Shown here: one piece after another, positions 1 to 50,631 of the stretch
Layout: each line of letters starts with the position of its first letter
How positions within the stretch are numbered: the first letter of the stretch is position 1
Assembly (NCBI GenBank): GCA_002104945.1
Contig: MCFH01000002.1
Span: 1 to 64,000 of the forward strand
Length of the DNA stretch: 64,000 nucleotides
Direction of reading: 5' to 3'
DNA from: Piromyces finnis finn
Lineage: Eukaryota > Fungi > Neocallimastigomycota
Position numbers and translations under genes: made by a program
The notes under the pieces: generated by a model
Database searches by the model: none
What the model saw: only the letters and a program-made list of their open reading frames with translations
Told to the model about the DNA's origin: nothing

Positions 1-2763
1 ATCGATCAAGAAAAACTGAGAAAGTTTATATTGAACAGGAAGATAGTAGGTCCATTACATTTTGTTATTATTCAAATGTAAATGTTCAAAGATTAAAGCG
101 ATATATTGTACTTTTTAATTTTATATATTTTTTTATTAGTTAAATATATTTAAAATATTAATTAAAAAAAAAGTTAGATATTCATACAATTAAAATGAAT
201 AATTTGAAAAATTGTAAAATTTGATTTGTTTATATGTGGTTAAGTCAGAGTTATATTCGTAATTTAAATATGTATTGTTTTTAAGAAATTTATAAATATT
301 TAAATTTAATATTAAACAAATGCATTAATTTTTAAAATGTAAGCAATAACAATTTAAATAAAAAAAGATTATAATTAATATGAAAAAAACAGTTTATTTT
401 CATTAGTATTTCTAACTTTTCCACTTTTTTTTTTAATAATAAATCTAAACAAATTGTTAATTATATTTATAGATAATAAAGTTATTTTAATAAATTAGTA
501 GATATATTAATAATTTAATTAAATTAATATATTAATAATAAAATATATAGTATATTAATATCTATTATATAAATTAAAAAAAAAAAGAAAACACTTTTTT
601 TTTAAAATCTATATATTAAAATTATAATAATTAAAATAAAATAAATGAATGTGTAATAAGTAAATAAATATAAATAACCTTTATTAAGTTGAAAGTTTGA
701 ATATAATTATTATATATTTGATATGTGTTATTTTGTAAACACATAATTCTTGACATTTAATTTATTTAATTTATTTATTAATAATATTCAATATATTATA
801 AAATATAATATAATATTATTAAAGTATATTCTAAAATATATTATTTGGATAAACTTTAATTATTAATAATATCGATTCTTTTTTTGGTATAAATTAAATT
901 AAATCCAAATTATTGGTTTAATCTATAAAACAATAATATATTATATAATATATTTTTTTTATGAAAATAAAAAAGTCAATTCAATTCAATATCTTTAGTT
1001 TTATATTAGTATGATTTATGAATTGTATTCTAAGAATTTGTATAAAATATCTTTCAAAATAGTATGTATAAAAAGTTAAGAATAATTAAATCTATTGATT
1101 AAAACTTTAAATATGTTATTTTGTATAGCGAAATCGTTATGTTTCAAGAAAAAGAATGACATTAACCAAAAAATATTATATTATCATTAAACATAAATAC
1201 ATATAAATATTTTTATCGGTTTAAATATATATGATTGTAATGAAAAAATTCTTTATAAATTAGAATTACTTTATTTTAGTTTTGCTTATTAAATGATTTA
1301 CAACAGACAAATATATAATCTATTTATAAACAATTATTATAGATAACTTAATTATAGTATTAATAAATGAAAATTTTAAAAAACAGAAAGGTATATTGGT
1401 AATTTTTACATTATTTCATATCACATAAGATTATAATAAATGGACATAGTATTAATAAAAATGTAGTTAATATCTATTTTAAACATTTAATTAAAATCAA
1501 AGTTTAAATATTAATTTTTATAGTTTTTTTTTAAATTATATTTTAAAAGAACAGATTTGTAATAATTTTATTTTGTAATGTTCTTTATTCAGTTATTCTT
1601 TTTTCAATAAACTTGTTTTTTTTTTTTTTTAAAAAGTCCATCCACTTATTCATGCAATTTATAAAAATCAAATTTTTAAATATTCTGTAAAAATCTTATT
1701 AATAAATAAAGTTTAAGATGTAAATAACTTAAACATTGATATTTTAACAAATAATAAATAAATAAATAATATATGAGGAATATAATATAAATAAATGGAT
1801 TTAATAAATTATTTTTCAATTATTAATATATCAATCCTTAAAAAATAATGTATTATATTAAAAAAAGGTATAATAAAAAATATAGTATTTTTAAAACCTT
1901 TTATTACTCTTTGTTATTTTGATTTCGATTCGAATTTAATATAATTTAATTTTATATTATTCAAAAGTAATATCAATGGGTTATATACAAATGTAAAATC
2001 TCAATGTTAATAATAATTTTATCAATATCAAAATTTCAAATTTTTTATAAAAAGGATAAAACAATTTAAAGTCATTTCTATTTAATGAACCAGATTAATT
2101 AATAAAAGTAGGACTCAATAAAAAACGATATATATATATATATATAGATATAGATATTAATATTTTTTGGAATAAAAATAAAAAATATAAAACAAAATAA
2201 AAAGTTGAAAAAACGTAATAGTATAATTAATTCTATAGAATATATTTTTTTGATTTAGTAATAATTATAATGTAAGATATAAGTTCTAAGGTTTTCTTTA
2301 TTTCTTTTTTTTTTTTTTTTTTCTAAATAATTTAAAATATTTAACAAAATCTATCGGTAATTAATCATAATATAACAATATGTATTTATATTTATATAAA
2401 TTTTAAAAGTGTTAAATAATAGTAGGTCTATTCTTTAATTTTTAATAATTATGAAAAGAGAAAAACATGCAAATAAAACAAATAAAGAAAATAATAATAA
2501 TAATAATAAAAAATAACAACATAAAAGAAACAAAATTAAAATTAATCTTTAATATATTCTTTTAATAAGTATATAAAACATTTTAATAGATTCCAAGATT
2601 TAAAGTGTATTATCAACAAGAAATTTTATTTTCAAGAAATTTTATTTTTAACTAAAAATTATTTATCTCACATTGTAACAAATATAACAATTAATATATA
2701 TATTTCAGCTTAAACAGTATTTACTTAAATTATTTTATTAATTAAAACCGTTATTATATTATC

Positions 2764-5700
2764 ATGGATGATGTTGGTAAGTGTTAAAATTTATAATACC
2801 ATCCTTTTAGATTTATAATTAATTTTGGAATTAAGAAGTACATTCTCTTCTTAGGTTAAAAAAAAAAAAAAAAATTTAGAATTATAATTATAATTTTTAT
2901 TATTAATTTTTTCTTACATGATATATGAAATAATAATATTTTTAAAAAATAAATTTTTTATCATTAATACTCTTTTTTTTTTGATACTTTTAATCTATTA
3001 AATATCAATTTTTCTTGTCAGATCCACAATTAATAACAAATCCAACAAAAAAGCGAAAATATAATCAAAAAGATATTGGTAAATATTAATTTTTAATATT
3101 ATAATTTAAATAAATAGAAAAATAAAAATAAAAATAAAAATTATATTTATATAAATGTATATAAAATATATAAATTCAATTAATTGTATCTATTAACGTT
3201 TAATTATTAATTTCTATAACAATTATTAATTTTAAAATAACACATTTAATAAATTAATAATTATATTACATTTCAATATTTCATTATATATATGCAATTA
3301 ATTTTATAGTTGTATGTGAATCATGTAATAAATCTATTCCTTTAAAATCCTCTATAAAATTATATAATACAACTCTTTGTTTTCAATGTAAAGTTATATT
3401 TACAGGTGGTAGACAAATTAAATCAGTAGTAGATTATTCTGAGAAAAGGAGTCGTAGTAGTTCTCGTTCAGTTAATATTAAATCAGAATCAATTCCAACT
3501 CCTGAAACTTCACCAAAATATTCTGTAAGTAGCAATGAAATACGAAATAATCCATTAAATAAAAAACAAGAATTTCATAATAACGTAGAAAATTCACCAA
3601 CTTCAACAAATACATTCACTCCTATAGCTTTTACAGAATTTTCAACATCTAATATTCCAGTAGCTCTTTCTAAGAACCCTGTTAATACTAATATTATTTT
3701 AAATGAAGCTAAAAAGGTTAAGCGTTGTGTCGGAAGACCAAAAAAAAATATTTCACCAAATATAAATACCCAAAAAACAGTTATAGATTTACAATCAACC
3801 TCGGTAGTATCATCCAATGATTCACCCAAAATACGAAAGAAAAGAGGACCGAAGAAGAAGAAGAAGAAAGAAGCTGAAAGCAATTCAACCATAAATAATA
3901 CAATTGATTTGGATATGTCCTTGACAATAGATTTATTGAATCGAAATTCAAATACTTCTTCTATTCAGACTTCGAATGATATTATAAAAAAAACCCAAAA
4001 TACTAAAACTTCTCATAATAATATGAATATTGATAATATTATTAATATTAATACTAATACAAATACCAATTCTAATTCTGATTATAATAATACCAATTCT
4101 GATACTAATATTAATAATACTATTATTAATACCAATATAAATAATAGTTTTAAATATAATAATTTAAATTCTCCATCATATACACAGTTTTCCAAAGATA
4201 CTGCATCGTATCCCTCTCCTGATATTCGTCACAATTTGAATTCTAATTCACTCATACCGAATAGCTTAAATTATATATTACCAAATCCTCAATGTAAAAT
4301 CAATTCATCTTCTGTAAAATCAACTGCGAATTTTCCAAATTACAACTCTTGTTTATCTAGTATTAAGAGTCAGAGTCAAAATCCAAATACTAATATAAAT
4401 GAAATAAATAAAAATGAAGACTTTAATCAAAGTAAAATCAATGATTATATCTATTCTAATCAATCAAAGTGTTCATACTTATCCCCGGAAGAAAAAACAA
4501 ATAATTTTAATTATACATCTAGAATTGAAACTAAATATAATAATCAACACCAACCAAGTAACTTATCTCGTAAAAGAAACGACTTTCAAAGTATTGATTC
4601 TTCATATATAAAATACAATAATAATGATAATAATAATAATAATTGTAATGATTATAATGATAATAATAAAAACCTTAAAATAAACAATATTCTTAATAAT
4701 AATGATGATAATAATAACAGTAATATTAGTATTTTTTCAAAAAATTATAGTGTTCCAAATTCATCAACAACTTCAATTATAACTCAACCTGTAGTTTCTT
4801 CTTCCATCTCTCCAATTTCTTCAAAAACTTCTCTTATATCATCATCTACGACCTCTATAATTTCAAATAGAAGTGTTGTTGATATTAATAATAATGACTT
4901 TAATAGTGTTAATAGTGAAGAGTATATAAATAATTATTCTTTTAACAATGATAGTAATAATGATACTATTAATCAAAATTTGTACCAAGTTAGAAGTATT
5001 AATCATAGATCTATTTTGCCTTCAATCGGAACTTTTAAACAGCACATTCCAATTCATAAAAATTCTACATATAATTCACAATTATTTTTATTAAATAATG
5101 GCACATCTTCTCATTATGTTTCACCTTCTCTTCAAAATAATTTCACCCATAAAATTCCTGAAACACCTAAATCATACATTGATGATAATCAACATTCAGG
5201 TATTCATGTTTCTTATTCTAATTCTTCTAATTCTAACATACATAATAATCTCGAAGAAAAGCAACACCAAAAAGAAGAAATGAAAAATATTCATAATGAA
5301 GATTTGAGTTTTTCAGATAATAGAAAAGATGTAGTAGAAGATATTAAGAATTATCATGAATGTATGCCAAATAATATTTCTTTTGTTAATTATTCATCGA
5401 ATAATCAATCAATTATATCATCTTCTTCACAAACATCTTCTAAGTGTGATAATCAAGGACTTTATACCTCACATTTTTCCTCATCTATTTCCTCCTCATC
5501 TTTGGGTAATAAAATGTTTTTAAATTCTTCAAATAGGTAAATAAGAAATTATTAAAATTATGATATAAAAGTAATAAATTTATAATTGTGATGTTATCGT
5601 ATTTTATTAAATTGTAATTAATTTTATTTTATTTATTTTTTAATATTTATAAACATTTAACATCAATATTTTAGTGATAATTATACCAAAAACAATAATA

Positions 5701-8700
5701 TCAAGAGTATGGATTCTGTAGATGTTAATGGAAAGTATAAATATTTTCCAAATGAATCTAATGATGTGTGTTATTACAAAAGAAACAGCTCAGAAGAAAG
5801 TGCGGCTACACTGCTTTCTTTAAAGCAAACAAATAATAATCAATATAATAATTTATATTGGAATGATAAAATTTCTTTAATTAATGAAAATGAGAATAAA
5901 CAATTAATAGAAATGAATTTACAAAAATTAAATAATAGTAAACTTGGTATCATTGATAATTCTTTTATTGAATCATCTGTTTATAATTCTAATGTATTAC
6001 ATAATGAGTCATATGCTGTTGATAGCAATGAAGAAAATACTAATGATAAAAATAAAACCCATTCATTTAAAAAAAATAATGATGAAAGTAATGAACTTTT
6101 AATGTATAAGAGAGAATCAAGCTCACTTATGCCATATGAATCAACTACTAAAATATATTGTGAAGAAATTAGTACTTCAAATAATTCTAATTCTAATTCT
6201 AATGATAATATTCAAAATAATGATTCTAATATCCCAATTGATTCTAATTCAGATAAAAAATGTTTAAAAAAGGGAATTGTTATAGAAGTATTAGATTCAA
6301 ATAATAATTGGCGTAAAGGTTATATAATGGATTTAACATCAAATGAATTTCAAGTAAAATATCATTTATCTGATAGTGACAGTCAACAATGGATACCACT
6401 TAATAGTCGTTGCTATCGTATTATTCACAGTAATCATTCAAATATTAAAGAAGAAGATATAAATATAATATCTGTTAAAAACAACCTTTATTCCAATACT
6501 TCTCATGTAAAAAGAGGTAGAGGAAGGCCAAAAGGAAGTAAAGGAAAGCCTAAAGTTAATAAGATTGAAGAAAAAATAAACTTAAATTCACAAATTGCTG
6601 AATATAATGAAAAAGATATATCTAATGATTTAGAGAATAATTGTCCTCAACATGTGAATACACTTGATAACACCACAAAACGAAAAAGAGGTAGAAAAAA
6701 GAAGTCAGAAAACCAAGCAGAAATAGAACCAATAAAATATGAAAAAACCCCTTCTAATGATGTAAAAAAAGAGGAAGAAAAGAAAAAAAATGGAAGAGGT
6801 CGTCCAAAAGGACCAAAAAAACAAACTAATATTGAAAAAATTAAAGAAGATTATAGTGAAAATAATTTAAAGAAACGTGGACGTAAATCAATTTTAGAAA
6901 AGTATAAAGATTACAAGGTATTAGAAGAAGATCTTAGTACTTTTAATAAATTAATGTATGGTAAAGATTTTAATCCAATACAGTTTGAAGTTGGTAAGAA
7001 GGCTTTTAAATATGATGATCAATATAATGTATATTATGCAGTAGAAATGTTACGTGAAGATATAGTAGTTGATCCAAAAACTCAAGAAGAAATGAAGGGT
7101 GTTTTAATTCATTATATTGAATGGGATGATAGTTGGGATGAATGGATTAGTAAAGAGAATAAAGATTTAGTTGAGTGTGATCCCGTTTTGTATGAGAGAA
7201 TTGAGTTCATAAAAGATGGTATTACCGCTTATAATTTCAAAAGTATGGTAATTGATTATATGATTGAAAAATATGATTCAGCCAAACAAGATGAAATTAT
7301 AAAAGCAAATGGTATTCCGTTACAAACACTAAATGCGTTTAATACTCTTGGTAAATCTTTAACATTACATGAACAACAGGATATTTTAACTGCGATTGAT
7401 AATTATACTGAAGAGCATTATTTGATTAAAAGTTCAGAAACATATGAAATAGGAAATAATACAGACGATTTAGTTAAAGATTCAATTAATAAGCGAATTA
7501 CTGAATTTAATCGTCGTCATAAGACTAATATTCTATTTCATCAATTTTACAGTAATCGTGTGGAAGGCATTAATTTTCCATCTGTAGATAAAATCAATCG
7601 ATTCCGTGATGAAATTGAGCATATTAGTATTGACAGAAATATACGTTTTCGTTATGGTATGTTTGAATCAGAAAATGCTTTTGATATATTGGATTATGAT
7701 CCTAGTATATTAGAAGGAAATCATAAGATGACCAAAGATTTAACTTCATCATCAGAGATATCAAACAAATTAATTGAAGTTAAAAAGGAAGAAACTGAAA
7801 AAATCGTTATTAAAAAAGATTCTGATAATGAATTCTTAATAAATAATGATATTAAGAATGAAATAGCACAAGATAGTTTTACTCCTGAATCTTCTATTAA
7901 TATGAAAATATTATCAAATGAATATAATATTAAGGAAGGAGATGAAAGTGACACATCAATTATTGATATGGAGATTGATTCTAGTACTTCAGATATGGAA
8001 ATTGGCAGTAATATAAATTTCATCATTAAGTCCAAGCCGTCTTTAAGTATACTTGAAGATTATAATTCTAATCCATCTGGTACAGATACAGAATCTGATA
8101 TGGATATGGATTCTGGTTCTGAATCAGATATTAATATTAATTATCAAATAGGACGAATGATTTCTAATAATTCACAATATAGAAAACAATTATTTAGCCA
8201 AAATAACAGTTACGAAGATAATTCAGAATCTGAAATGGATATGGAAATAGATTCAGAGGGTTCTGAAGTTTATGAGTATTATTTAAAGAATATTAAACCT
8301 ACAATTGAGAAAGAAAAAGAAAAATCCATTGAACACTCTGAAAATAGTGAATGTATTAAGATGATTAAAAAAGAAGGACTATTAGAGGATGAAGATGATA
8401 CTATAAAAGAAGACAGCTCCGAAGAAATGATATTAAAGTCTGAGAGAAATGATGCTTTAAAAAATATAGTAAAAGAGGAAGATGAAGTATCAGAGGATGC
8501 CACTATAAAAGATGAAGAAGTTGTTACTAAAGGTGAACATTTAAAAAATCCTAAAACCTTCTCAAATGAAGAAAGTGAATCTAACGAAAAAGGAAAAAAT
8601 GTTGTAAATGATAATGAAATCATTAATAATATTGTAGATAATGATGAAATTATTAAAAATGAAAATATCAATAAAAAAGAAGGAAATAATAAAAATAATG

Positions 8701-11700
8701 AATATAATAATGATTACTTAAAGAAAGAAGAAAAAATAGAAACATTAACATCATTTATGGAAGATCTAGGAAAATATAAGGTAACAAAAGATAAATCACC
8801 AGAAGAATATTATACTCGATTAGCAGTTAAAAGAAAAGAGGATGAAATAAAAATTGGTACTAATTTAACCATGTGTAAGAAAAAATCTCATATCTCTAAT
8901 CATAAATTGGCATTAGAAGAGTGGATTCCATGTAATACCATATATACTAATAATGACCAATTATATATTAAGCAAGTTTATTGCGATGCTCAAGGTCGAC
9001 TTAAACTTAGTCGTGATTGGTGTTCAAGAGATAGCCATATTGTTCGTGAAGAATTTTATGATAACTTTTCTTACATTGCTGTAAACTTTATTAATGAAAA
9101 GAGAGTCATTTGTGGTCATCTTTTCCCAAATCAAGATGTAAAACTTTGGGAACCACGTCGTGATGATTATATGATTACTGGTCCAATTCGTGAAACAAAA
9201 TTAGAAGAGGATGAAGATTTAAGTACAATTACTGGTCCTATCATTTATTGTAAAGGATGTATGAGAAGAATTAAAGATGTTCGTTATTATTGTACTTATT
9301 GTGAAAAATCAGAGGATGATATTAAGATAAGTGATAAAGAACAAGAAACAAGCTATAATCTTTGTCTTTATTGTATTCAATGTAACTTTCCATCTCATAT
9401 CCACCCTCGTTTATCCTTTGCTTACCAAAATCTTAATGCAAAAATTAATGATTTACAATTATTAGAACAAAAACATCATATGGAAGAGTTAGATAAAGAC
9501 TATTATCATCGTATTGAAATTAGTGCTAATGATACTACAAGCACAGTTCAAAAACAAAAAGTATATCCAAAAAAGTGTGCATTTTGTGATGAAGGGGAAT
9601 ATACTAGTGGAGAAACCTTTATTAGTCACTATCCATTTAAACCGGGTGATTCCAAACTTAACCATCTATTTTGGGCTCATGAAAATTGTGCAATTTATTC
9701 CCCAGGTGTTTATAAAACAGTTGAGGGACATTGGTTTAATCTTAGTGATGCTTTAGTTCGTGCACGGAAAACAAAGTGTGCTGAATGTAAGCATCGTGGT
9801 GCAACAATTAAATGTTTTGATCCTGGTTGTCATAAAGTTTATCATTTGAGTTGTACTCATAAACAAAATACTTATTTTGAAGAAGGTATGATATTTTGGT
9901 GTCCATATCATGAACGTCTGAATGAAGAATTGGACAGCTGGGAAGAAAAATATAATTGTGATGTTTGTGGTATTGAATTAAATGAAGAATCATGGTATAC
10001 ATGTAAAAAATGTAGTAATGATAATTACTTCTCTACATTCGATCTTTGTGTTGAATGCTATGAACATTCATTTCCAAAGGATCATGATCATCCGAAAGAA
10101 CAATTTAAAATGATTTATTCTAAGGATAAAAAGAAGGATTTGCAGGAAAAACAAGAGGAAGAAATTGAATACTATGAAAAAAAGAGTAAGTACTATCAAC
10201 AATTTGAATTAAAACGTAAACGTAAGTTGGATGGTGAAAAAACACTAAATCGTTGTATATATTGTAATGCCGAAATCACTTCTGATACCCCATGGCGTTC
10301 AGGTTATAATGGATTAGTTATGTGTGAGAAATGTTTCACCAAAGCACCAACTCAATTTATTAATGATAATGAAAATAAAAATGGTGAAACAGTTAATGTT
10401 GTAGAATATAATACATCTTCTAATGTTGGTAAATATGCTGCAGCTGTTGAGGACTATGCTTATCAATATTATCTTACACGTGATCTTTATGCTAAAATTC
10501 AAACAGAGGGAGCTGAGATAAAATATTTGAAAACTTATAGTCCTACTGACGATCAGCTTTATTCTCTCTTTTTTGACTATTCTTATTATGATATTGTTTC
10601 TAGAGCTCCTCGTTGGGCAACACATTCAGGTACAGATTATCATGGAACTTGGCTTCCTCAAATTGTTCGTATGGCTTTAATGCGTTATTCCTATCGTAAT
10701 GATAAGGTTCTTTCTAACTTTTTAGGTCGTGGTACGGATGTTATCGAATGCTTTCTTTTACAACGTAAATCTTGTGGTATTGATATTAATCCTACAAGTA
10801 TCCAATTAAGCCAACGCAACTTAGCTTTTGCAATTCCAGAAACATTTAGCGAAGAAGATCGCCCAAATGCTGAACATCGTCCAATTCTTATTCAAGGTGA
10901 TTCTCGACAGTTGAAAGGGCCTCTATTTGTTAATAATTCCTATGATTTAATTCTTTCTCACCCTCCTTATAAGGATTGTGTCGCATATAGTTCTCATATT
11001 GAAGGTGATCTTTCTCGTTTCCCAGATTTAGATGATTTCTACTTGGAAATGAAAAAAGTTGTTAAGGAAACTTGGAGATTATTAAAACCAAATTGTCGTT
11101 GCATTTTAGGCATAGGAGATAATCGTCGTGGCCGTTATTATCAACCAGTATCTTATCAAGCTATTCGAAATTATTTAGATGAAGGATTTATTATTGAAGA
11201 GTTAATTTTAAAACGTCAAAGATATTGCCAAGCTTCACCTTTAGGTCTTTTTCTTTGCACTCAACATGACTTTTTAATGTTTACTCATGAATTTATTATT
11301 ATTTTGAGAAAGGTACCTCACCCAAAGGAAAAACCATTTTCTTTAAAACCACTTGAAAAAGAGATTAATATTCCATACAATAAAAGTATTCGTTTAATTC
11401 CAAGTTATCCATCTGAAAGAAAGTCTGTTGTCATTGGTACTGTTTGGAATCTGGCCATTTCACGTTCCTATGGTCTTCAAGAACTAACCCTTTCCAGAGC
11501 ATTAGAACGTTTTGGTAGAGATAATGAATACTGGGAGGAAATTGATCTTTTTGACTATCAAGAAAAATTACAAGATTTTTGTTTTACTCATCCAAGTTGC
11601 GTAAATGATATTGAAGAAAATGAAGACTATTTTGATGATGAAGATCGTATTATGAGAGGAGGTGCTGATGAATTGACTGAATCAAGTGATTATACTAATG

Positions 11701-12723
11701 CAATTTCTAATTATGAGTTAGAAAGACAACGTCGAATTCAAAAAAACAATGAATGCTTGGTAAATTTGGGTCTTCTTATGGAATTAAATAAAAACAATAG
11801 TAGTAGTAATAACTATATCTATTTCCAAAAAATTTTCAATACTCCACCTGAAAAGAATTTCAATATAGAGGAACGAAAGCTATTTATCATTTTTATCCCT
11901 CATTTAGATATTCCTTCTACCTATATTTTTAAACGTTCCAAGATGGAGTGGATCACAGAGTATCGTCATTTTATTATTGAACAAGCTAAAGCGGCTGTTA
12001 ATAAATTAAAGAATGGTGGTTTATTTATTGTTGGTGGAAAAGATATTCGTGTCGGTGAACTGGTTAGCCGTGATGGGGATGTCTATGAAGGTTCCTTAGA
12101 GGATGATTTTGAAGATGAATTTGAAGAAGGAAGTGACTCTGATGATGATGAAGTAGTTGATATGGATATTTCTGATGATGAGAATGAAAATGATTTAGAA
12201 GACGGGGAAATAATGGAAGAGCGTCCAGAATCTGAAGTAGAAGAAGGAGAAGCTGATGATGTACCAATTAAATCTCAAAATAATAAAGTTAAAAAGAAAG
12301 TAAAAAAATATTTAAGAAGTGAATATATACCATTATCTATTTTACTTTACGAAGATATTTATCGTAACGTTTCCTCTGAAGAGCTAAAGCTTCGTGAGTT
12401 CTTCATTGTAACTCCAGAAGGTTATGAATGTGATAATAAAAATGTAGATATTTCCAAGATGAAAACAAAACTTAAAGAAACCTATGCCGAGTACGATAAA
12501 GAAAAGATTATAGAAAATAAATATTTTGATGGTCAATTTTCAAATCATGCAAATATTCGAAGAATTGCTCCAATAGTTAATGTAAGTTTCTATATTAATA
12601 TATATATATATATATATTTAAATATTTTAAGTAATCAATTTCAAATTCAACTAATATATTTATTATTTCTATAATATATTTTAGGCATTTTATCTAGTTT
12701 TTATTAAGTTACCAGAAAAATAA
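2764..12723 (+). CDS. Multidomain chromatin-reader fused DNA amino-methyltransferase (N6-adenine/N4-cytosine type), ~3048 aa
   Basis: Exons 2764-2776, 3022-3078, 3406-5536, 5675-12581 and 12685-12723 are joined by phase-compatible GT-AG introns and total 9147 nt. ORF 3909-5540 is cut by a donor at 5537 (AG|gtaaat), which splices in frame to ttttag|T at 5675. Motifs: AT-hooks (GRGRPKG, GRPKK); Tudor/chromo-barrel-like segments (~6270-6420 and ~6984-7170, IHYIEWDDSWDEWI); ZZ-type fingers (~9249-9410, ~9957-10090); extended PHD (~9576-9910); CxxC..CxxC GATA-like finger (~10254-10335); MTase motif I FLGRGT (10719), GIDIN, and motif IV-like SHPPY (10956-10970). Confidence 0.9.
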
Positions 12724-20988: not shown

Positions 20989-23900
20989 ATGATAAAGATA
21001 CCCTATACAATTAAAAATTATAAGTAAGAACATTTTTTATACATAGATATTCGTTTTATATTTTGATCTTTTTATAAAAAAGGAAATATTCTTAATTAGA
21101 GTTGAACACACTTTTATCATTATATAAATAAATTCTTTATATTAATATTATATCTTTAATATGTATGCTTTTATTTATAAATACATTTTCAATATATATA
21201 TTATCATGGAAAAATTATTTAAATGAATTATAATATGAAAACTTGACTTGAATATTATTTCTTGACATAAATAATAAAAAAATATTAGATTAAATAAAAT
21301 AAAATTTATTGAAATATGGTTTTTATTACATTATTTATTTTTACGATATACATACTCTGCAGCATTACCATCTTGTATATCAAAAAATTCAATATGTACT
21401 CTGTCTGATAAATCTTTATTGCAACCATCAAAGTATTGTATTTCTTCAACTACTATTTATATGGGTATTGACGAAACTGGAAAATGTAAAGTGGATAGTG
21501 ATTTTATGAAGAATCCTGGAAACTTTTTTTTTAATAGTGATTATAAGTTAATGAGATCGGCAAATGTTATTGCTGTTGGTTATATTTGTTCAGGAATAGA
21601 TGCTACAAAATGTAGAATAATGGACGATGGGATATATATAAATAGTGTTTCAAGTACTTTAAATTTCGCTGTTGATTATTCTGCTAGTAATACAAACACT
21701 ACTTCAAAAAACATATTTATTGACCAAAAGACAAAATTTTATATTAATTCTGGAGTTGAAGGAAAAAAAAATAAAGATAATGAAGCATATCCTCTTATTA
21801 AATGTGATAGTAAAACATGCAAGGCTGTACCATTACATGAAATTTCTGAAGGATTTTATATTAATAGCGGCGATGTTTCTAAAAAAACACTTATTGAATG
21901 TAATAAAACAGAATGTAATTTAAAAGATAATCCTACTATCGGTTATTATATTAATGCTGATAAAGATGATGTTCAACATCCTTTGATACATTGTAATGAA
22001 AGTCAGGGCATATGTGAATTTCAAATTTTGAATTCTATTAATTCTGGATATTATATTAATTCTGGAAGTGAGAATAAAAAAAGTATAATTCGTTGTGATG
22101 ATAAATCTTGCTACTCTTTAATTCTCTCAGAAAATCTTTCACAAGGCTATTATTTAAACGCAGGAGACAGCAGTGCTCCAATTATTACATGTAATAAGAA
22201 TTCTTGTTCATCAGGTGCGAATGAAGGAACTAAATTCAAAGGAAGTTATCAACTTATTAATAACTCTTTAAGATTTAGATATACAGATAATGATACAATT
22301 GAATGTAATAGTGATAATGATTCAGAAAGTTTATATTATATGATTGCATTAGAAAAAGACAGTTTTCCTGGAGTTAGTGAAAATACCCAAGTTTTAATTA
22401 AAATTTCAAAGAATTCTATAAGTCAAGTAGTATTAGATAGTTATTTACCTGTAGGAAAATCCGATTTAAAGTTGAAGCATGGCGATTTAGAAATAGATAA
22501 AGGTATAGATTTATATTATTGTTCTAAAAGTAGTGAATTATGTTTATTGAAGTCTTCTTGTAATGAGGGTCATTTTTTACTTGATACACAAAGTCAAAGA
22601 GCTTATTATTGTTCAAATAATAAATTAATTGAAGTAACTTATTATAGTGGCTATTATATTGATAGTGGGAGTGTTGTAAAATCCCAAACACCTTATTTAA
22701 TTTCATGCAATAATGGAAAATGTAAAAGTTTAAAAACACCTCTTAATTATTATCGAAATGCTGCAATTCAATTTAAACCTAATTCCAGCCCGTTAATTTA
22801 TTGTTCATCTTCATATTGTTTTGAAGTTATAGCCAATCCCGGTTATTATCTTACTACTTCAACTACTAATGATAAAAATATTTTTCAAGGAGTGATTCAT
22901 TGTAAAAATGAATCTTCAGAGTGCGTGAATATTAAGAGTAATATTAATACTAAATATTATATTAATGAAGGATTTGATAAAAATAGTAATAGAATAATTC
23001 GTTGTACCAATTATCAATGTAAAACCATTAAGGCTAGTAATGGATATTATTTTTCAGAAAATACATCACAACTTATATATTGTTCAAATACATTTAATTG
23101 TGTCATGATTAATGCTGTTATTGGTTATTATTTTCTTCCGGATGAAAATCAACAGAATATTATCAAATGTTTAAGTTCTTCTAATATAGTAACTTGTGAA
23201 ATACAGAAAGCTTCTAAGGGATTTTATATTTCTGTAAAGAATAATATATTAATTGATTGTTTGAGTGATATTAATAAATGCTCTACAGTTCATGCAGTTG
23301 ATGGCATTTACCGTTCTGCTATTACTAGTTCTACACATTTTTCTCGAAATGATGATGTTAATAAACGATCATTTATGTATAATAAAAGTCAAACTTTAAA
23401 AGAGACAAGTTCTTTTGTAAATTCAGTGCAAAGAGCTATTAACAATATAATGTATAACATTATTATTTGCAAATCTGGTCAATGTAATGAACTATCTTCA
23501 TATGAGCTAAATAATGTTCCTTATTGCACATATACAAATAATAAATGTTTTATCATTAATACCTCATTAATTAATGAAAAAGTTATTAATCGTATTGAAG
23601 CTGGTGAATTTTGTACAAATTTTGATCGCTCTATATTTTATTTTGCCACTAACACCATAGATTTAGAAGTTGATACAATTGATGCCGATCTTTCAATTTA
23701 TTCAGATACAACAACTATCACTAATTGCGTTATTGTTTCTAATGCTTATGCTAATAATTATTTTCTTACCGAAAATCAAATTTTCCGTATTAATGAAGGA
23801 AGAATAACAAAAATGGCTAATGAAGGATATTATTTTATTGATATTGATAAAAATGTTCTCCTGACCGATAGTAAAGAAGAAAGTCTTTATAATAAAAAAT

Positions 23901-25264
23901 CAATCAAGCTTAGTAAATGTGATGGTCAAAAATGCAAAATAGTAGAAAAGACTTCGGAAATTTCATATTATGCTGACGTTAATAAACATATAATTAAATA
24001 TGATCCAAATAATGATAAATATTCTTTCCCTTATGAAAAAGATATAATTTGTATTTACAAAAGTAATAGTTGTACTCCTAAATACGATTTAAAAAATAAT
24101 GAATTATGCATTACATATAAAGGTGAATTAGCATTAGTAAGTAAAGAAATTATTGGCTTTGAAACTGGTTCATGTTATAAAGCAGCTTCTATTATTAACC
24201 CTATTTATGGTCTTTCTACTTATTTCTATGAAATGGATACAAATTCAGCTAAAAGAATAGTAACTTCTGGATATTATTTAACAGATAGTTTAACAAATGG
24301 TTCTATTAATATTAAAAAATTTTCGAAAGCATCGACTTCATCAATATATCTTTATGGTTGCATAGACTCTAGGTGTAAATTATATGAACCCATGGAAAAT
24401 TCCTACTACTATGATAATATTACTCAACATATATTTAAGTATGAAAATTCAGCATGGTATATTGTAGATAAACAAGGTTATTCATTTATTAAAATGACAC
24501 CAGAATTAACTCATGTTTACAAAATATCAAAATTAATTAATAACATTTTAATTGAAAAAGTAACTAAAAGTGGATATTACTATACTATTGATAATAATAT
24601 GTATGAATGTTATATTAAAGAAAAAAGCAATGTAAATTGTATTCCTATATCTAATAGTGACTATTATTATACTATTGATAAAAAGTTATATTACTGTGCT
24701 TATGATTCTGAAAATTTAGAAAAGACATTATGTAATATACAACTTTGTATTTCCGGACAAATATATTATTTTAATAAAAGCTATTATCGATGTAACATTA
24801 AAGATTATATTTATGAACCAATATCAGAAAATTTATGTCATGCTCTAGACACAGTAATTATAAATTATCCAACCTTTTTAGAAAAAGAATATCCCACTCG
24901 AGTAAAATTGATGCTTAAATATATGTATGAAATTAATATAACTGATATTGAGACTAATTATAATAGTTCATATATCCCATCCATTACAGGTGTATTTAAT
25001 CAATGCAAATATGATGTAAATAATAATATTCCAACTTTTAATTTAATATGTCTTAATAATTTTGTAGCATTAAGTTCAATTAATCCACCAAAGATTTGCT
25101 CCATAAAACGTATGGGCCTTGTAGAATGTATAGAAAATGAAGAACATCCTGGACGCTGTCACCCAGATAATGCTTGGTCTTATCTTTATAATATAAAAAC
25201 AAAATCCTTAATAATAATTGTTATATTTTTATCAACTACTTATTTACTTTATATGTCAATATGA
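20989..25264 (+). CDS. Secreted/surface-anchored Cys-rich repeat protein, fungal cellulosome scaffoldin-like (copy 1)
   Basis: The 3.9-kb ORF has many GYY(I/L)N...LIxC...C repeats. The frame stays open upstream to a hydrophobic signal-like stretch (IWFLLHYLFL..SAALPSC), and there is a C-terminal hydrophobic tail. A putative first exon at 20989-21023 splices in phase (gtaaga..tattag) to 21289; this start is less certain. Confidence 0.75.
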
Positions 25265-46374: not shown

Positions 46375-49300
46375 ATGAAAACTAAAACCAAAGTACTTAA
46401 TTTGTAAGTAATATTAAAATAATAAATTAATGTTTAAAAGTTAACAATAATAACAATCAAAAAAAATTTATTTTATAATTTTTTTAAAATAAGAATTGGT
46501 TTACTGGGTTGTTCATTATTATGCATTTATAATGTAAATGCAGCCGGACTTCCAAGTTGTGTGTATGAAAGTGGAAAAATTTCAGCTTCATCTCCATCAC
46601 CATGTTTTGATGAAACTAAAGGTTGTTTATATGATAATAATAATTGTAGTACTACCGAAGGAAATTACTTTTTCTTAAAAAGTAATGATAGTTATGTAAA
46701 GTATACAAGAAATGATAAAAGTGGAACTGCTATTCAATTTGGATATGTTTGTGCCAATTCTAAATGTTCTTTAATTGAAAATGCAGGCATATACAAAGTT
46801 GAAACGGGTGTTTTTATAAATACATATAAAAATAATAACTCTGTAAGTTACCAAATATGTGATATAACCAATTATGACTATTCTATAGCAATAAAGAACA
46901 ATGGAGCTAATAATGGTTCATTAAGAGATGCTCTTATTTTATGTGAATCAGATAGCTGTGTATATAGAAGCCCAAATGAAGGTGATGTTTATATGACAAC
47001 TGAAAGTAATATATTAAAATGTAATAGTAAGACATGTACAGGACAACAAACAGATTCCGCTATCTTTATAAACGCCGCTGCAGAAAGTGGATCAAGTAGT
47101 CAATTAATTAAATGTACTGCTGGAAGCTCCTCAGCAACATGTAAATTAGCTTCCGGAAATAGTAATAAATATTATATGAATGGAATGAGTGCCAAGTCAA
47201 TTATTTACTGTAATGATAGTAATTCATGCAAAGTATATAAAGACGTTGAAGATTCTTATTATCTTAATGGTAATGAAGATAAAGAACAATTAATTAGTTG
47301 TCATAATGGATCTTGTTCACTTCAAAAAGGATTAGAAAATGGCCATTATCTCACAATGCCTTTATCATCAAATGAATCAAAGATATATAATGTTATTGAA
47401 TGTGTTAAAGAAAGCGAAAAAATAGTATGCAAAGTTAATTCAAGAGAATCTCAAGGATATTATAGAAATTATGATGAAAATACAAATTCTACATCTCCAC
47501 TTATTCAATGTACTTCATCAAACTGTTCTTCATTAAAACTAGGACAAGATATTCTTCCAGGTTATTATGTAGATATATCTGATGGAAATGCAAATATATT
47601 AGTTTGTAATGAAAATAGCTGTGAAGATGATTCCACCTCTAAGACTTATACAAGTTCCTCTCCAATTATAAATGGTAATTACGTTTTTAAAGATGGTAAT
47701 TTACAACTTGTTATTAATACTAAGGCTGAAATAGATGATAATAAGTATTCTGCAATTAACAGTAATAGTTCAGACGAAGAAGCTCATTATTATTATGTTG
47801 AGGTTTCAAATACTAAAGGTTTTCCTGGTATTAATGCTCAAACAACTACTCTATTCAAAGTTTCAAAATATTATATTGCAAGAGTTATTTCTGATGGTGC
47901 CATATTTGTTAGCGATACTGACAATAAAATTACTAAAAGTGGCACACCAGGAACAGAAACTACAATCTACAATTGTGTTAAATCTAAAAAAACCTGTACT
48001 ATAAATAAATCTTGCACAGTTGATACTTATTTCCTTGACAGTATGAACAAAATTGGATACTACTGTAATACAAAAGGAATTATCGAACAAATTACAGCTA
48101 ATGGTTACTATATTGACAGTAGTAATGGTAATAACAAAAGAAACTTAATTCACTGTGAAAATTCTGAATGTACTTCTAGTGTTTCCACAAACTATTATGT
48201 AAATGCTGGCAGCAACAGCTCCTCTAAGCCTTTAATTCATTGTAATAGTAGTATTTGTTATGCTACTTTAGGATCAAATGGTTACTACCTTAGTGGTTCA
48301 AAAATTGATGGAAACTATGGAATTATTAATTGTTCTTCATCCACTTCATGTGCAGAAGTATCAATTAACAGTATTAAAAGAAATGAACACTACTATATTA
48401 ATAATGGTGGTGATAATGTTCAAAAGCCTTTAATTCAATGTAAAAACAAGAGTTGTTTAACAGTCGGTGCCTCTGAAGGTTATTACATTACAAATGATAG
48501 TAGTAATCTTATTAATTGTGAAAATGCCTCTAGTTGTTCCGTTATTTCTGCCTCTGTTGGTTTCTATAATACAGCCGTCACTGTTGATTCTGGAAAAAAA
48601 ATTATTGAATGTTCAAATTTAGCAACTGTTACATGTGAATTAAAGGATGCTAATGTTGGTTATTATGTAGCAAAAACTTCAAATGTTCTTATTAATTGTA
48701 ATTCTACACCATGTAAAGCTGTTACAGTTTCAAATGGTATTTATCGTAGTGCTACCACTAAAGTCATTTCAACTAATAAGAGAGATAGTATTCCAGATGA
48801 AGAAGAAGGAGATGTTAACAATAAGGAAAGATCTAATTCTTCTGTTGTTTACAATATTATTTCTTGTACTAATAGTGGATGTACTGAACTTAGCACCTCT
48901 GAATTATCTTCCATTCCAGTTTGTACTTTCAATAATAATAAATGTTTCATCAATAACAAAGTTAGTATAAGTACTACTACCGTAAGTTCAATTTCTGCTG
49001 GTGGTTATTGTACCAATAGTGACCGTTCCATATTTTATTTTGCAACTGATTCAATTGTTATTGATCCATATATTATTGATGGTACTACCTCTATTTACAC
49101 CTATACAACTACTACTACTAACTGTATTGAAGCCGTTGACAAATATAGTAATAATTATTACACTGTTGGCAGTAGTATTTATAAAGTTAAAGAGAGTAGT
49201 ATTTCTCAATTAGTTGCTACTGGTTACTATTTCATTAATGTTGAATATAATACATTAGTTTCAAGTAATTCCATTGAGAATTACAATAATGAAAAAGTTA

Positions 49301-50631
49301 AACTTTTCAAGTGTAATGATAATAGTTGTACTATTATTGATAAATCAGAAATTGTCACATACTTTGCTGATATCAACAAGAGAATTATTATGTTTAATCC
49401 AAATAGTGATTCTTACTCATTCGCTTATGAAAATGATGTTATATGTATATACTCTAATAATAAGTGTACACCAAGAGAAGATATTAAAAATATGGAATTT
49501 TGTATTACTTACAAGGGAGAACTCTGTTTAGTAACTAATGATATTAAATCTCGTGAAACTGGTGAATGTTACAAAGCTGACAGTATTACTTCCAAAATTT
49601 ATGGATTATCTCAATATATGTATTCTATGAATGCATTCGCTGCAGAAAGAATTACTGATACCGCCTATTATGTTATTAGTTTATCTACAAACAGTACTGC
49701 CACTACTAGAGACTATGATGGAAGAACAAACTCTCTTAGAATTTACGGTTGTCTTGAATCAAAGTGTGATATTCAAGAACCAGAACAAGGTGTTTACTAT
49801 TATGATAGTATCAGCAGATACATGTTCAGATATGATGGAGAAAAATGGAATTCACCACAAAGTTCTGGTTATGCTTTAATTAGTATTAATTCTGGGGATA
49901 CCTACATTAATAGATTCAGCTTAAATAATAATAGAACTATAATTGATGGAAAGGTTAAAAGTGGTTACTACTACACCATTGATAAGGAAATGTATGAATG
50001 TGATCAAGAAAAGTATTTATGTGAAAAGATTACAAATAGTGGTTATTACTTCACTGTTAGTGGTGAAATTTATCAATGTATCTATGATTCCGAAGGATTA
50101 GAAGCAACTGAATGTGTTAAAAAGAACTGTATTGTAGGTCAATACTATTACTTAAACTCTAAATACTATTACTGTAGTTCCGGTTACATGCTTAACCTTG
50201 TTTCTGACAAGACTTGTGAATATGATGATAAAGTTATTATTAACTTCCCAGTAGCATTCAGTGAATCTAATCCAGATAAGATCAAGAGTGCTGTCGAAAG
50301 TGTTTCTATAGTTAATAATTCTACTGCTGTTGTTACTAACATTAATAATAAGTATATCACTTCTGTTTCTGGAGTTTTCACCAATTGTACTTATACCGTT
50401 GAAGAAAAGGATAGTGAATTTGATTTAGTATGTGTTAATAACTATGTTGCTGTTAATGACAAAACTGATAACATTGAAATTTGTTCTCTTACCAGTATGG
50501 GATATACTGAATGTATTGATGATGAAAATAATCCAGAAAAATGTAACCCAAGTGGTGCTATTTCTCAATATAAAAAAGGACTTACTTTCATTTTATCTCT
50601 TGTAATTTCTTCCCTTCTTTTCTTCATTTAA
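46375..50631 (+). CDS. Secreted/surface-anchored Cys-rich repeat protein, fungal cellulosome scaffoldin-like (copy 2)
   Basis: The 4.1-kb ORF has GYY..N...LIxC..C repeats. The frame extends upstream through a signal peptide (IGLLGCSLLCIYNVNA-AGLPSC). A putative micro-exon MKTKTK at 46375-46392 is followed by a 48-nt intron. The C-terminus CNPSGA plus a hydrophobic tail is GPI-signal-like. It is clearly paralogous to 20989-25264. Confidence 0.8.

Follow-up and report, generated by a model that had tools for sequence, protein, structure and literature searches.

A probable chromatin-associated DNA amino-methyltransferase of the "Clade 4" family in the gut fungus Piromyces finnis

The window analysed here, a stretch of 64,000 nucleotides (nt) at the start of contig MCFH01000002.1 of Piromyces finnis (Neocallimastigomycota), contains at 2764-12723 a gene, BCR36DRAFT_408217, in which a series of DNA- and chromatin-binding modules is fused to a methyltransferase of prokaryotic type. 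We consider it rather likely that this gene belongs to "Clade 4," the chromatin-associated amino-methyltransferases of early-diverging fungi, and that its product works by the mechanism set out below, with DNA, most likely the N6 of adenine, as its target. Along the protein the order is AT-hooks, an Agenet/Tudor-like domain, further AT-hooks, a chromo barrel, a ZZ finger, an extended PHD finger (ePHD), a second ZZ finger, a GATA finger, the catalytic domain and a degenerate second methyltransferase-like domain. There is precedent for this architecture: the same one, including the second inactive domain, was described computationally in 2016 for Clade 4 of basal fungi (Iyer, Zhang and Aravind, BioEssays 2016, PMC4738411), and the P. 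finnis gene joins that family. A first-pass annotation of this DNA, made from the letters alone, had suspected that the family might be known, and Clade 4 is that precedent; the domain order it gave is borne out by Pfam, by profile searches against PDB sequences and by the homologue alignment.

The catalytic domain matches the Pfam family PF01555 (N6_N4_Mtase) at E 7e-15, with 56 bits against a gathering cut-off of 26.7. The motifs by which it had been recognized in the first pass as a prokaryote-type amino-methyltransferase, FLGRGT, GIDIN, GDSR and SHPPY, are located at residues 2380, 2399, 2439 and 2459 of the deposited protein (P0001), corresponding to window positions 10719-10970. The S-adenosylmethionine (SAM) loop comes before motif IV, and the order is therefore non-permuted; the best sequence match in the PDB is the permuted TTHA0409 (2zie), which is aligned as two swapped pieces. 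SHPPYK is present without exception in the 114 fungal homologues aligned, which represent six fungal phyla, and NFLGRGTD is at least 90% conserved; three gut-fungus sequences have 94-96% identity over the domain. Conservation of this kind is what selection for activity would be expected to leave on an enzyme. All the named homologues returned by the protein search belong to the Chytridio-, Neocallimastigo-, Mucoro-, Glomero-, Mortierello- or Zoopagomycota; orthologues occur in Mucor lusitanicus (MUCCIDRAFT_114945), Rhizopus microsporus and Spizellomyces punctatus (SPPG_04959). Pfam gave no match in the P. finnis protein to PF02384 (at E up to 5), to PF01170 or THUMP, or to PF05063, the motif being HPPY and not the DPPW of MT-A70, and an NCBIfam scan of the C-terminal region returned no match.

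Where, then, does such a domain come from? With a ceiling of E 1e-3, an exhaustive profile search yielded 2,812 relatives, and directly after the fungal proteins rank co-linear ones of 240-550 amino acids (aa), bacterial and archaeal by their source names, which match PF01555 strongly and UPF0020 weakly. The HPPY motif is found in 127 of the 128 long, fungal-type sequences and in 61 of the 70 short, mostly prokaryotic members of the subfamily. A Chthonomonas methylase has the motifs that distinguish the family and, over 256 columns, 38% identity with the P. finnis domain. The first-pass annotation had called for a phylogeny of the domain with its prokaryotic counterparts; in a quick IQ-TREE tree, rooted at the midpoint only, the 29 fungal domains form one clade (Shimodaira-Hasegawa-like approximate likelihood-ratio test, 98) nested among the prokaryotic HPPY sequences. 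Sister to the fungal clade, on a long branch, stands an ENA metagenome protein of 683 aa (P0185) with a weak ePHD and an HPPY methyltransferase, which may be from a non-fungal eukaryote or a fragment.

The prokaryotic relatives also keep telling company. Of the first five loci, three were orphans; in a fourth the neighbours were genes for a D12 methylase and an Mrr-like protein, in the fifth type I-U cas genes. A scan of species genomes with a 19-sequence prokaryotic alignment then gave at least 598 relatives, from which 80 loci (L010-L089) were kept and their flanking open reading frames (ORFs) clustered. In 26 of these 80 there is a DpnII-family endonuclease gene (PF04556, E 4e-35), which nearly always adjoins the methylase gene itself, on the same strand. 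A D12-class (Dam/DpnM-type) methylase gene (E 2e-62), usually a same-strand neighbour as well, is present in 19, and 13 loci have both; a PD-(D/E)XK nuclease gene occurs in seven. Most of the remaining loci have, immediately downstream, one of a few recurrent ORFs without an assigned family, and altogether 63 of the 80 have a recurrent partner. In one such pair, where the genes of the DpnII endonuclease and of a 245-aa methylase share 3 nt, the methylase aligns along its whole length with the P. finnis domain at 37% identity. More distant co-linear relatives (about 31% identity) are found on 848 mostly conjugative plasmids, where they are annotated "DNA adenine modification methylase." Since many of the prokaryotic relatives have DpnII endonuclease and Dam-class methylase genes nearby, the ancestral substrate appears to have been DNA, and the ancestral target probably the N6 of adenine. 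DpnII-family endonucleases are specific for GATC, and the substrate of the DpnII-linked members is presumably the adenine of that site. The fungal enzyme would still act on DNA, a view strengthened by the DNA- and chromatin-binding modules fused to it.

Three observations on these neighbourhoods deserve mention in their own right. A 242-aa HPPY methylase (P0194; L005/L006) stands directly upstream of the type I-U CRISPR-Cas genes GSU0053, GSU0054 and Cas3. In the Pseudomonas aeruginosa plasmid pMKPA34-1 (L091), the gene of a distant relative adjoins a DNA cytosine methyltransferase gene. Among the 80 loci, the ORF families that recur directly after the HPPY methylases, in the same orientation, and that have no counterpart in Pfam (about 170, 402, 189, 113 and 358 aa) may be uncharacterised restriction endonucleases.

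The modules in front of the catalytic domain are mostly of kinds that bind DNA or chromatin, and the fusion of Royal-family, ePHD, ZZ, GATA and AT-hook modules in one gene with a prokaryote-type amino-methyltransferase carrying FxGxG and then HPPY holds as first described. In the P. finnis protein, Pfam places zf-HC5HC2H and zf-HC5HC2H_2 above threshold, and its ZZ, Tudor-knot and MSL3-chromo scores all fall below. A profile of residues 1880-2290, built from 50 sequences, matched among PDB sequences the ePHDs of KMT2D (9e-15), PHF6, PHF7, JADE1, BRPF1 and NTO1, the fingers of GATA-3 and GATA-1 (9e-5, 7e-4), and the ZZ fingers of ADA2, ZZZ3, PRT1 and BIG (4e-3 to 0.2). The first ZZ finger, for which no significant ZZ match was found in the databases, is assigned from its Cys/His pattern and its conservation in the family. 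For the chromo-barrel segment, the nine best of the 16 matches listed in a PDB sequence search are the chromo barrels of MRG701, Eaf3, MRG15/MORF4L1 and MSL3 (E 0.008-0.3). The Tudor-like segment gave no match in a single-sequence PDB search; it does align with stretches annotated by Pfam as Agenet/Tudor_4 in homologues from Rhizopus and Umbelopsis. Three canonical GRP cores of AT-hooks lie at residues 165, 981 and 1074, with several weaker ones besides. Conservation throughout the family is limited to the part from the first ZZ finger onward (P0001 residues ~1885 to the end), and the first ~1,880 residues are lineage-specific, the two Royal-family domains excepted. In the gut-fungus comparison, the Tudor-like region is about 68% identical, against 94-96% for the catalytic domain.

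At the level of the DNA, the locus reads as one expressed-type nuclear gene. Its rebuilt exons (2764-2776, 3022-3078, 3310-5536, 5675-12581 and 12685-12723) form one open coding sequence (CDS) of 3,080 aa in which all introns are GT..AG, with the donor GT of the second exon at 3079-3080; the three small exons proposed in the first pass are all present in the model that matches P0001. The latter, "hypothetical protein BCR36DRAFT_408217 [Piromyces finnis]" (3,012 aa), was a 100% match in a protein search with the methyltransferase region. It differs from the 3,080-aa model solely in that 4591-4794 is spliced out, an in-frame, Asn-rich stretch of 204 nt whose donor, GTATTG, is weak and which the longer model reads through. 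The protein has 3,012 or 3,080 residues depending on this candidate intron, between whose two outcomes the DNA does not choose. The first-pass proposal of a single gene of ~3,050 aa was right as to one spliced gene, and its structure departs from the deposited model in the one intron that the latter adds.

The joining of two large ORFs through an in-phase intron, also proposed at the outset, agrees with the deposited model and is conserved in a related gut fungus. In a metagenome contig (L009), the orthologue at 1519-12444 has the identical two-ORF layout, with an upstream ORF (its N-terminal zinc finger has 63% identity to P0001 residues 23-100) followed by the large ORF; the gene caller had broken it into two proteins. 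The upstream ORF ends in ...AATAG/GTAAG (the slash marking the junction), and 304 nt on, an acceptor TGTAG/T restores the frame and the AG/T serine codon exactly as at 5536/5675, which means that position and phase of the intron are conserved; its length (304 nt, versus 138 nt in P. finnis) and its sequence differ. The last exon, of 13 codons, is validated by its peptide: PIVN/AFYLVFIK lines up with PIVHAYYLIFxK, the C-terminal residues of homologues from chytrids, Mucoromycota and Zoopagomycota. In two metagenome models that were left unspliced, the frame runs on into the last intron.

After the catalytic domain comes a conserved region of ~280-420 aa that reaches the C-terminus and is probably a second methyltransferase-like domain, degenerate and non-catalytic. 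In the structure model, its predicted order of strands and helices mirrors that of the first domain. A G-poor VV(I/M)GTVW takes the place where the SAM loop would be, and a helical insert, YE..R..RI..N...L..LGL, precedes a strand with PHL/PHIP in place of HPPY. When modelled separately (predicted local distance difference test, pLDDT, 76), all 50 of its best VIA matches were Rossmann SAM-methyltransferases, though only at Z 8.4-6.7; a profile of the domain against PDB sequences found just a chance-level JetB helix. The model of both domains together has a pLDDT of 77 and a predicted template-modelling score (pTM) of 0.81, and because the latter is high, it suggests that the two pack against each other.

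How might such a protein work? With SAM as donor, the enzyme would methylate an exocyclic amino group in DNA, most likely the N6 of adenine. AT-hooks and the GATA finger would hold it on AT-rich DNA, and the chromo barrel, Agenet/Tudor, ePHD and ZZ modules would pick nucleosomes by the state of their histone tails. The degenerate domain would pack on the active one as a built-in non-catalytic partner, in a manner resembling METTL3-METTL14 or AMT1-AMT6/7. Engagement of both DNA and methylated histones in chromatin is the existing proposal of Iyer and colleagues, which would extend to P. finnis; these authors also put forward, by analogy with DpnA, a preference for single-stranded DNA (PMC4738411), which is possible for the Clade 4 enzyme.

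Several points weigh against this reading. DNA methylation by members of the family is deduced from motifs and from the gene neighbours of relatives, and histone-binding specificity from domain families. Of the five prokaryotic relatives looked at first, three have housekeeping genes around them and no nuclease nearby. Our literature search found no characterised precedent for a His at the first position of motif IV, so that the product base is not predictable from it. In Mucor, MetB and the MTA1 complex already account for most N6-methyladenine (6mA; Lax et al., 2024, PMC11258239), so that little of the bulk mark is left to an HPPY enzyme. The case for the second domain is modest: Foldseek returned nothing for it at E below 0.08, and hhalign of the first domain with the second is weak (E 0.003, 10% probability). 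The extra intron 4591-4794 leaves the gene model with two candidate forms. Lastly, the nearest solved folds of the catalytic domain are the N2-methylguanosine (m2G) tRNA enzymes Trm11, TrmN and Trm14 (Z ~17), and NCBI names one bacterial relative "TRM11 family."

These last two points are also the start of the case for an RNA methyltransferase, Trm11-like and making m2G or N6-methyladenosine (m6A) on chromatin-associated or nascent RNA. The three tRNA enzymes are the closest structures in Foldseek (E 8e-10) and in VIA (Z 16-17), a profile match to archaeal Trm11 is co-linear (E 9e-4), and the weak UPF0020 matches of the prokaryotic relatives fit as well. However, hundreds of Rossmann methyltransferases lie within 3 Z units of the top (VIA, Z 14-17), so that structure scores do not set the domain apart, and the tRNA enzymes simply share its non-permuted order. 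The P. finnis domain matches PF01555 and not PF01170; many of its prokaryotic relatives lie within DpnII-type restriction-modification cassettes; and the protein has no THUMP or other RNA-binding module, but does have DNA-binding AT-hooks and a GATA finger. The first-pass annotation had itself named clustering with Trm11-like enzymes as what would speak against a DNA target: by fold the nearest neighbours are indeed Trm11-like, whereas the sequence family and the relatives' gene neighbours are those of restriction-modification DNA methylases. Taken together, this makes an RNA target improbable.

If the substrate is DNA, might the base be cytosine? PF01555 holds N6-adenine as well as N4-cytosine enzymes and has seen repeated switches of specificity (PMC8885841), and a chromatin-reader fusion of a PF01555 enzyme writing N4-methylcytosine (4mC) exists in the N4CMT of bdelloid rotifers. 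Yet N4-cytosine enzymes typically have Ser at the first position of motif IV (PMC4738411, Box 1), whereas His is invariant here, as in the relatives paired with DpnII (GATC, adenine) endonucleases; N4CMT is permuted and was acquired separately; and G+C, which ranges from 10 to 36% across the region, is only ~20% in the window. We hold a 4mC writer to be about as unlikely as an RNA enzyme. Slighter still are the chances of a chromatin scaffold or reader with a non-catalytic methyltransferase domain, or of an enzyme methylating a protein amide such as a histone glutamine: the [DNSH]PP[YFW] clade does include protein glutamine methyltransferases (PMC4738411), the His of motif IV is unusual and one degenerate methyltransferase-like domain is already present in the protein, but the SAM-loop and HPPY residues are (nearly) invariant across the 114 sequences and six phyla, as in a working active site, and HPPY persists in those prokaryotic relatives that are linked to restriction systems and so have to methylate DNA.

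Set beside Clade 4 as published (PMC4738411), the P. finnis protein shares the non-permuted catalytic domain, the fusions to chromo-type, ZZ (the first by Cys/His pattern), PHD, GATA and AT-hook modules, what is probably the second, C-terminal inactive methyltransferase-like domain with its KRI helix insert, which Iyer and colleagues place between strands 3 and 4, the prokaryotic relatives in DpnII cassettes, and the restriction to early-diverging fungi seen in all named homologues. It differs in its N-terminus, which is extended by a very long Asn/Ser-rich stretch and has an additional C4 finger, in an acidic insert of ~80 aa in the second domain, and in having one Agenet/Tudor-like domain and one chromo barrel where many relatives have several MBT or Agenet repeats; moreover, Neocallimastigomycota are not named in that paper. 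The prokaryotic HPPY methylases are 37-38% identical over the entire catalytic domain and have the same motifs (WATHxG..Y.G.W, FxGxGT, DINP, GDxR, HPPY, GDLS, IGDxR, KRQ), but are stand-alone proteins of 245-550 aa without chromatin modules or second domain. The PDB entry "DpnA" (5hek) is a marginal match (E 0.9), aligned solely along a SAM-loop region near the C-terminus of its chain, a placement that hints at a permuted order; "DpnA-like" should therefore be taken to mean that a methylase occupies the position of DpnA in the cassette.

Rotifer N4CMT (Rodriguez et al., 2022, PMC8885841), the closest analogue with experimental evidence, is likewise a horizontally acquired bacterial PF01555 enzyme joined to a reader of histone methyl-lysine, and the only such fusion shown to write a eukaryotic DNA mark. 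It is of the permuted beta type, however, writes 4mC and was acquired independently, with no eukaryotic homologues reported; its reader is a lone HP1-type chromodomain at the C-terminus. Mucor MetB (Lax et al., 2024) is, similarly, a DNA adenine methyltransferase of bacterial origin kept in early-diverging fungi. The link to it made in the first pass is mistaken, because MetB belongs to PF02384: it is MmeI-like, defined by that family and by its own MmeI-type target-recognition domain, and has no battery of chromatin readers (PMC11258239), whereas the protein described here is of PF01555 and has no PF02384 match, so that membership of the MetB family is rejected. A search of the literature for DpnA or N6_N4_Mtase in fungi found only Iyer et al. 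(2016) and the rotifer paper; PF01555 goes unmentioned in the Mucorales study, including its candidate list (PMC11258239), in a 2025 survey of eukaryotic 6mA and in a 2026 review of fungal DNA methylation. With AMT1/MTA1-AMT6/7 and METTL3-METTL14 the protein shares an active subunit with a catalytically dead paralogue, here apparently in one chain according to the structure model, but those heterodimers are of the MT-A70 family, and neither PF05063 nor DPPW is found here.

Early-diverging fungi have 6mA levels among the highest reported in eukaryotes. Two writers are currently credited, the AMT1/MTA1 complex and MetB, and the HPPY family would be a third, of restriction-system origin. A reader-laden methyltransferase conserved from chytrids to Mucorales, under apparently strong purifying selection on its active site, bears on whether fungi carry another DNA mark and on how histone state steers a bacterial-type enzyme. 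It is possible, though on balance rather unlikely, that the conserved family gives early-diverging fungi a second DNA mark, independent of AMT1 and MetB, written only where its chromo barrel, Agenet, ePHD and ZZ modules find a given histone state and with the dead domain as obligatory partner in cis; one candidate would be 6mA outside symmetric ApT, for instance GATC-derived or in single-stranded DNA exposed by transcription or replication. For Piromyces finnis itself, the gene is an ordinary orthologue of the Clade 4 family, and its interpretation was largely anticipated in print. The features of the gene are collected in Table 1.

Table 1. Features of BCR36DRAFT_408217, in window coordinates (aa, residues of P0001).
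Feature	Position	Strand	Basis or remark
Whole gene BCR36DRAFT_408217	2764-12723	+	Six-exon translation identical to deposited P0001
N-terminal CxxC-x17-CxxC finger, aa 24-52	3078-3395	+	Codons span intron 3079-3309; 63% identical in upstream ORF of L009
First AT-hook, GRP core	3717-3755	+	Motif
Asn/Ser-rich low-complexity region	3912-6221	+	Gut-fungus lineage-specific; homologue coverage only in close relatives
Intron joining the two large ORFs	5537-5674	+	Phase 2, GT..AG, AG/T = Ser codon; kept in L009
Agenet/Tudor-like Royal-family domain, aa 897-948	6270-6425	+	Aligns to homologues P0048 (271-317) and P0034 (402-454)
AT-hook cluster	6507-6893	+	RGRGRPKG, GRGRPKG, weaker KRGRK motifs
Chromo barrel, MRG15/Eaf3/MSL3 type, aa 1133-1197	6978-7172	+	MRG701 E 0.008, Eaf3 E 0.025; weak Pfam Tudor-knot, MSL3_chromo-like
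Acidic low-complexity linker	7899-8741	+	Composition
First ZZ-like zinc finger, aa 1889-1946	9246-9419	+	Invariant Cys/His columns; start of family-wide conserved core
Extended PHD finger (ePHD, zf-HC5HC2H)	9573-9917	+	Pfam E 4e-9; KMT2D ePHD E 9e-15
Second ZZ finger	9951-10100	+	PF00569 E 5e-3, below cut-off; ADA2 ZZ E 4e-3
GATA-type zinc finger	10251-10340	+	GATA-3 E 9e-5, GATA-1 E 7e-4; PF00320 matches homologue P0034
Predicted catalytic amino-methyltransferase, non-permuted PF01555, "HPPY" type	10524-11324	+	FLGRGT 10719-10736, SHPPY 10956-10970
Putative second, degenerate methyltransferase-like domain	11379-12720	+	Without GxG, without [DNSH]PPY; intron 12582-12684 inside
Conserved helix insert (KRI) in second domain	11694-11789	+	Family alignment
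Acidic insert in second domain, ~80 aa	12057-12299	+	Gut fungi and some chytrids only

Elsewhere in the window, two further long ORFs, 21419-25264 (1,281 aa) and 46561-50631 (1,356 aa), and five of 272-503 aa had no Pfam match at E up to 1e-3. In the whole window GATC is mildly under-represented, with 76 sites observed against 105 expected from base composition or 118 from dinucleotides, and CTAG is low as well (44 observed, 83-105 expected).

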